This document shows positions 54,740-54,830 of a stretch of 64,000 bases of DNA, in pieces. Both the position numbers and the translations under genes were made by a program. How positions within the stretch are numbered: position 1 is the stretch's first letter; every line of letters starts with the position of its first letter. The DNA lies in the sequence record OP557969.1; one strand, given 5' to 3'. The notes under the pieces were generated by a model. The model was not told the origin of the DNA. It saw only the letters and a list, made by a program, of their open reading frames with translations, and did not search any database.

Positions 54740-54830
54740 GGAAGGGTGGCAGAGCGGTTGATTGCACTCGCCTACTAAGCGAGCAAGTGTTAGAAATAAC
54801 GCTTCGTGGGTTCAAATCCCACCTCTTTCG
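54740..54830 (+). tRNA. tRNA-Ser with the rare anticodon ACT, CCA not encoded
   Basis: GGAAGGG/CTCTTTC, CTCGC-CTACTAA-GCGAG, 8-bp variable arm with GAAA loop, G73. Confidence 0.85.

Follow-up and report, generated by a model that had tools for sequence, protein, structure and literature searches.

A tRNA-Ser gene with an A34 (ACU) anticodon in Asteriusvirus coliphages and its probable role in AGU decoding

The stretch of DNA analyzed in this work (64,000 nucleotides from sequence record OP557969.1, hereinafter the window) harbors, at positions 54740-54831 of the + strand, a tRNA-Ser gene whose anticodon is ACT. The feature is real, conserved, and almost certainly functional; the best explanation is that it encodes a functional phage tRNA-Ser, which would be charged by SerRS and which probably reads AGU directly through an unmodified A34. 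Public records already annotate the gene, the 121Q entry including an identical tRNA-Ser(act) (gene 131). What appears to be new is that tRNA-Ser(ACU) is part of a widespread, phage-enriched type, allelic with tRNA-Ser(GCU) in the genus Asteriusvirus.

Structure and Conservation of the tRNA-Ser(ACU) Gene

The gene is one of the seven tRNA genes called by ARAGORN in the 64-kb window. It matches Rfam RF00005 with 49.9 bits (gathering score 29; E 1e-8) over the full length of the model (positions 1-71), with no non-canonical pairs flagged. The sequence can be read as a completely paired acceptor stem of 7 bp, G2-U71 and G6-U67 wobbles among them, a D stem carrying C11:G24, an anticodon stem of 5 bp, and a standard T arm. 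The anticodon loop is CTACTAA, with the anticodon at 54774-54776 (+) and A34 at 54774; the variable arm, according to the fold and the Rfam alignment, is 20 nt in total, with an 8-bp stem and a GAAA loop; the acceptor stem is followed by G73, and CCA is not encoded. ARAGORN, Rfam, and the reading of the sequence agree over 54740-54831 with the sequence-only reading, which had described an intact type II tRNA-Ser with G73 and the loop CT-ACT-AA.

Among type II tRNAs, the discriminator base is A73 for Leu and Tyr and G73 for Ser, and SerRS recognizes the long variable arm together with acceptor features without reading the anticodon. On the basis of its long variable arm and G73, the gene can be assigned to the bacterial type II tRNA-Ser; moreover, since SerRS ignores the anticodon, a type II tRNA with G73 should take serine regardless of the anticodon it bears. 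The identity elements reported for the E. coli SerRS are G2:C71, A3:U70, and C11:G24, and the last two are present in tRNA-Ser(ACU). G2, instead, pairs with U71 and not with C71, and a G2-U71 pair where the favored G2:C71 is expected counts against the explanation preferred here.

Over all of its 92 nt, the gene shows 100% identity among 18 GenBank Asteriusvirus records, which originate from numerous laboratories and countries. Position 54774 is likewise A in contigs of independent public runs, where neither an A>G change nor any other variant of the anticodon was seen, and in a metatranscriptome contig covering 54697-54907, which may derive from DNA because it also spans the promoter. Base 54774, for which a sequencing error had been considered, is thus A throughout the relatives and run contigs, and a misread G is ruled out by the 18 identical records and the independent contigs. 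Overall, tRNA-Ser(ACT) was found in 19 of the 53 related records matching the region. A second, diverged version lies at a different site in EJP2; its D arm and anticodon arm (ACT included) are identical to those of the window gene, whereas its variable arm differs and its acceptor stem carries paired changes at 1-72 and 7-66. This copy has the G2:C71 pair and one A-C mismatch in the T stem.

Genomic Context and Organization of the tRNA Cassettes

The matches of 53800-55100 are jumbo coliphages from the genus Asteriusvirus (121Q/PBECO4 group), and the best of them is phage ph0011 (99.8% identity, full length). The window has a G+C content of 33%, and nearly all of its genes lie on the + strand. 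Ten nucleotides before tRNA-Ser(ACT) there is a sigma-70-type promoter (54701-54729, +) with the arrangement TTGACT-17 nt-TATAAT and an upstream TG. It belongs to a 29-nt repeat, for which no copies are expected by chance, with two exact copies (53050, 54701) and one, at 53809-53837 (+) ahead of tRNA-Ser(GCT), that differs by a single mismatch. Counting the sites at 52327 and 52739, the promoter at 54701 is the fifth strong TTGACT/TATAAT site of the region, in keeping with the earlier proposal that tRNA-Ser(ACT) comes first behind promoter copy 5. The palindrome AGTACT is located inside all three copies of the repeat (53050-53078, 53809-53837, and 54701-54729).

Seven nucleotides after tRNA-Ser(ACT), at 54839-54913 (+), ARAGORN and Rfam (68.4 bits) identified a tRNA with anticodon CAT (Met, or Ile2 if lysidine-modified), and the two are probably made as a dimeric precursor. 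This second gene is annotated as tRNA-Ile in ph0011 and as tRNA-Met in other records. The ATA codon occurs 15.4 times per 1000 in the window ORFs, so the tRNA may be a lysidine-dependent tRNA-Ile2. The third member of the ACT-type cassette is a tRNA-Asn(GTT) called by ARAGORN at 55004-55078 (+), and the same Ser(ACT)-Met-Asn order is found in 121Q. Upstream, at 53844-53933 (+), ARAGORN called a tRNA-Ser(GCU) with the same sequence as those of BF17 and PBECO4; this is the normal Ser(GCT) gene that the sequence-only reading had placed at 53844. An ORF for an HNH (NUMOD4) homing endonuclease, annotated in ph0011, Turkey3, and JP4, lies between the two serine tRNA genes at 54154-54678 (+). A tRNA-Ser(TGA) and a tRNA-Arg(TCT), detected by ARAGORN and Rfam at 51636-51805 (+), complete the phage's set for A/U-ending codons. 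At 50971-51040, where ARAGORN made no call in the window, 121Q has a tRNA-Gly(tcc) annotated at the corresponding place.

The comparison of related phages revealed that PBECO4 and BF17 share an upstream gene and the promoter, followed by Ser(GCT)-Met-Asn, and that 121Q, behind this gene and promoter, has Ser(ACT)-Met-Asn instead; the two types diverge directly 3' of the -10 box. Since the same promoter and upstream gene precede either tRNA, sequence comparison identifies the G34 and A34 serine tRNAs as alternative alleles of one slot in Asteriusvirus. The 121Q-type phages are devoid of tRNA-Ser(GCT); Sharanji lists only two serine tRNAs and, on this basis, lacks the GCT gene. Both alleles occur in tandem in the window phage, ph0011, Turkey3, JP4, and WPEC3. 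In the window, similarity to the GCT-type phages (BF17) stops near 54081, where the BF17 type has tRNA-Met, and the HNH gene is absent between promoter and tRNA cassette in 121Q and BF17. The HNH/NUMOD4 gene is the likely agent of the junction near 54081, that is, of a homing-driven join of two tRNA cassettes.

The body of the window tRNA-Ser(ACT) is only about 65-78% identical to the GCT genes with which it was compared, and the closest ACT/GCT pair in the viral sample, among the matches listed, reaches 86%. The two genes differ along their whole length, which rules out a G34A point mutant of the resident tRNA-Ser(GCT); the A34 gene is therefore not a recent point mutant.

Codon Usage and Direct Decoding of AGU

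Codon usage was computed from 77 simple ORF calls (16,795 codons) of the 64-kb window only. AGT, previously described as common in this DNA, is in fact its commonest serine codon (22.5 per 1000, 34% of Ser), while AGC accounts for 3.9 per 1000, with an AGT:AGC ratio of about 6:1. The arginine codon AGA is used at 8.0 per 1000, and CGG does not occur among the 16,795 window codons. More generally, the phage tRNAs decode heavily used A/U-ending codons (UCA, AGA, AGU, AUA/AUG, ACA, and AAY). The host, E. coli, has a single tRNA-Ser(GCU) gene, at the serV locus, and decodes AGU solely via the G:U wobble of that tRNA.

In this context, we propose the following scenario. The strong early-type promoter at 54701-54729 would transcribe a Ser-Met(-Asn) precursor, which would be processed by RNase P and 3' trimming, with CCA supplied by the CCA-adding enzyme; the tRNA would then be charged by the host SerRS, and its A34, remaining unmodified, would form a Watson-Crick pair with the U of AGU. 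The phage would in this way possess its own decoder dedicated to the serine codon that it uses most, while the host, or the co-resident tRNA-Ser(GCU), would deal with AGC; tRNA-Ser(ACU) would fill the role that tRNA-Ser(GCU) holds in the sister phages. Transcription, charging, the unmodified state of A34, t6A37, and AGU-specific decoding are all inferred; in particular, U36-A37, as in other ANN-codon readers, suggests t6A37. AGU being a serine codon, the tRNA would recode nothing.

Direct reading of AGU, already suggested from the sequence alone, is the best-supported of the proposals made for this tRNA, and it is consistent with the position of AGT as top serine codon, with the AT- and AGT-rich genomes of the carriers (see below), and with a result in E. 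coli lysate, where an orthogonal tRNA was more efficient on AGU with an ACU anticodon than with GCU (PMC6158751). In that study, AGR codons had been removed from the template as a precaution (PMC6158751).

As for the fidelity of such a decoder, the presence of tRNA-Arg(TCT) together with tRNA-Ser(ACT), as a countermeasure against AGR misreading, was also considered and rejected, the former not being enriched (14/85 vs. 22/83, p 0.13, among the matches listed). Misreading of other third bases by an unmodified A34 has been reported in certain contexts; here, it could touch the AGR arginine codons. Furthermore, sister phages of the same host and of similar composition thrive with G34, so that codon supply alone leaves the choice of A over G unexplained.

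Distribution of tRNA-Ser(ACU) in Viruses and Cells

To describe how widespread this tRNA is, IMG/VR, which is redundant, was scanned for genes in which the anticodon loop CTACTAA precedes the T loop GGTTCRAATCC with a type II spacing; the survey is confined to genes that have both of these sequences. The scan retrieved at least 118 loci, and ARAGORN, which assigns the amino acid by the anticodon alone, called Ser(act) in at least 85 contigs; the genes comprise at least 66 distinct sequences and at least 46 clusters at 85% identity. Among the matches listed, 67 of the 75 unique viral genes (counted with flanks) have G73, 74 of 75 have an acceptor stem paired at 7/7 positions, and all 75 have a variable region of 13-23 nt, a structural profile that is the same as that of the viral tRNA-Ser(GCT) genes. 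Uncultured carriers mostly had nothing close among isolated phages in BLAST searches. An isolated and unrelated phage, Rhizobium phage RHph_TM2_3B, has an annotated tRNA-Ser(act).

A matched scan, with N at position 34, was then applied to viral contigs and to one genome per prokaryote species. Among the matches listed, the viral contigs yielded 12 tRNA-Ser(ACT) and 77 tRNA-Ser(GCT) genes, the former representing roughly one eighth of the viral AGY-type serine tRNA genes, whereas the prokaryote genomes yielded 0 and 111, respectively (Fisher p = 4e-5). According to these data, the general absence of ANN tRNAs assumed in the sequence-only reading holds for this tRNA in cellular genomes (0/111) and fails in phages (12/89), again among the matches listed; this, in turn, implies that the window tRNA is a common phage type and not a one-off. 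In 120 prokaryote loci, among the matches listed, ARAGORN called no A34 tRNA besides Arg(ACG).

The carriers of tRNA-Ser(ACT) have a G+C content of 26-49% (median 38%), while loci with GCT only reach 68%; the median AGT usage is 19.1 per 1000 in the former and 12.7 in the latter, and the two groups differ in G+C (p 0.0009) and in the AGT share of AGY codons (p 0.02), all among the matches listed. The two genes are seldom found together, with a GCT gene in 2 of the 85 ACT loci (fetched stretches, among the matches listed). On a weakly resolved tree of the short Ser genes, the G/A state changes at least 15 times, compared to 46-49 with shuffled labels, which is only a sign that tRNA-Ser(ACT) may have arisen or moved several times, through several origins or transfers.

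Among the matches listed, ARAGORN also made other viral A34 calls, namely Leu AAG, Thr AGT, Asp ATC, Tyr ATA, Asn ATT, Cys ACA, Phe AAA, Val AAC, and Ser AGA; these may be miscalls, many of them having odd loops. Two unrelated viral contigs (L001:51-127 and L002:3422-3495) harbor a tRNA-Arg(TCT) whose 21-nt anticodon arm equals that of the window tRNA-Ser(ACT) except for base 34.

Alternative Explanations

In principle, A34 might be deaminated to I34, either off-target by the host TadA or by a phage deaminase, so that the tRNA would read AGU and AGC and, mistakenly, AGA. We consider this very unlikely. The anticodon arm is similar to its counterpart in E. coli tRNA-Arg(ACG), with four of five stem pairs and six of seven loop bases the same, and TadA edits sites one base away from its motif, albeit only when overexpressed (PMC12255301); in the same work, however, editing was lost, or almost lost, upon single changes at the motif positions tested. 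TadA substrates require a stem-closed 7-nt loop, YUACGAA, and the loop of tRNA-Ser(ACU), CUACUAA, has U instead of G at position 36. Inosine would also place serine at AGA, used 8 times per 1000 in the window, and one RNA-library contig has A, not G, at position 34, although this is weak evidence because the contig may represent DNA.

A search for a phage TadA found none: 121Q and EJP2 hold two CDA-fold genes only, neither of which is both TadA-like and tracking A34. The first corresponds to the Sharanji protein WNN14772.1 (L012:6357-6836), published as a "tRNA-specific adenosine deaminase" and 95% identical to a 121Q protein (L010:1486-1974) whose best solved relative is the T4 dCMP deaminase (PDB 1vq2, E 4e-34), TadA being matched weakly. 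The T4 Cd-like match contradicts a tRNA-specific adenosine deaminase, and the sequence comparison indicates that the published annotation is probably wrong and that the enzyme is of the T4 dCMP deaminase type. The second, which does provide the phage with a candidate enzyme, is a minimal CDA-fold deaminase of 122 aa with HAE and PCxxC motifs (121Q 227250-227615; L011:1435-1800). Its family is virus-only, with 196 phage records (Synechococcus, Pseudomonas, Aeromonas, and enterobacterial jumbo phages); it is also present in GCT-only phages such as PBECO4 and hence does not track the A34 tRNA. Given the U at position 36, which breaks the TadA motif, and the failure to find a phage TadA, the misreading of AGA through I34, raised in the sequence-only reading, finds little support, the two phage deaminases being either dCMP-type or not tracking tRNA-Ser(ACT).

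A different possibility, also raised at the outset and in our opinion unlikely, is that A34 shields the phage AGY decoder from an anticodon nuclease of the host, or from some other defence aimed at tRNAs, that recognizes the GCU anticodon loop, so that serine decoding would survive the cleavage of the host tRNA-Ser(GCU). Evasion of tRNA-targeting defences is indeed known for phage tRNAs whose anticodon loops are altered (PMC10264068; see also PMC11555353 and PMC11464382), tRNA-Ser(ACT) is strongly enriched in phages (0 of 111 cellular Ser genes among the matches listed), and the window phage retains the G34 and A34 versions behind the same promoter. Nevertheless, no nuclease targeting tRNA-Ser(GCU) was found in the literature on tRNA-targeting defences, the reported serine targets being UCN decoders, as for VapC (PMC10264068) and for Ec1ApeA, for which Ser(GGA) is an example. 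AGC codons, moreover, would be beyond rescue by an A34 tRNA. All the carriers, among the matches listed, are AT-rich, which codon supply explains directly, yet the same correlation fits evasion too, given that an A34 tRNA helps AGU-rich genomes only. It is improbable, on the other hand, that A34 and G34 are near-neutral, interchangeable cassettes moved by homing endonucleases, or that the gene encodes a tRNA-like RNA with a non-translational role. Either allele occurs among closely related Asteriusvirus phages, an HNH gene sits at the cassette junction, and the EJP2 copy has a mismatch in its T stem, as such a view would suggest; but the gene is perfectly conserved in 18 genomes despite variable flanks, and a canonical tRNA-Ser(ACT) is kept in many independent phage lineages (at least 46 clusters) and in no cellular genome, among the matches listed. 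This conservation, together with the many phage lineages and the lack of cellular copies, argues for phage-specific selection.

On a more speculative note, tRNA-Ser(ACU) might be a phage-specific class, retained across dozens of unrelated phage lineages and absent from cells, because A34 gives what G34 cannot: immunity to some new host defence that targets tRNAs, modification-dependent control, or conversion by a phage enzyme into another wobble base; we give this idea a low probability. If it were true, conversion of A34 by a phage enzyme (e.g., the small virus-only deaminase) would change the reading of the split AGN box during infection.

Significance and Comparison with Known Systems

ANN anticodons other than that of tRNA-Arg(ACG) are regarded as missing from, or prohibited in, bacteria, a view with which a perfectly conserved coliphage tRNA-Ser(ACU) contrasts. 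E. coli together with phages of the 121Q type, of the PBECO4 type, and with both alleles represents a natural and tractable system in which one may ask what makes cells avoid A34, whether phages tolerate or exploit it, and what an unmodified A34 does within a split codon box. The system is also relevant to genetic-code engineering in which AGU is reassigned using ACU anticodons.

Concerning the literature, a 2021 review stated that phage tRNAs are without the same ANN genes as bacteria, which it termed prohibited (PMC8007984); the paper that it cites for the absence of ANN (PMC6409571) does not discuss the point. tRNA-Ser(ACU) appears once, uncommented, in an Acidithiobacillus tRNA array (PMC4758250). 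No treatment of a phage tRNA-Ser(ACU), of its A34, or of its spread was found in the open-access literature. The 121Q gene 131, the RHph_TM2_3B gene, and that of Acidithiobacillus share with the window gene the anticodon and the type II build, and they have only been annotated or listed.

Among the closest known systems is tRNA-Ser(GCU), in the form of both E. coli serV and the phage gene at 53844-53933, which is alike in its type II structure, G73, long variable arm, loop CU-NCU-AA, and AGY box, but has G34, whereas the A34 of tRNA-Ser(ACU) matches AGU only. The standard bacterial A34 tRNA, tRNA-Arg(ACG) with its TadA, shares A34, the loop C-U-A-C-x-A-A, and four of five stem pairs (argQ); it differs in having G36, while tRNA-Ser(ACU) has U36, a type II Ser identity, and a split codon box in which inosine would miscode. 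tRNAs with an unmodified A34 include the tRNA-Thr(AGU) of Mycoplasma capricolum and the A34 mutants of Salmonella tRNA-Pro. The Leuconostocaceae, in addition, have Leu(AAG) and Thr(AGT), that is, ANN anticodons besides Arg(ACG) (PMC8007984). In all of these, the codon boxes are four-fold and loose reading is harmless, whereas the AGN box of tRNA-Ser(ACU) is shared with arginine. Finally, large phages such as T4 and T5 have tRNA sets, connected with codon supplementation and with the evasion of tRNA-targeting defences, that are likewise clustered, driven by promoters, and directed to heavily used A/U-ending codons, with homing endonucleases (SegB) among the genes; the set of the window differs from them in using an anticodon that is said to be missing from phages (PMC8007984).
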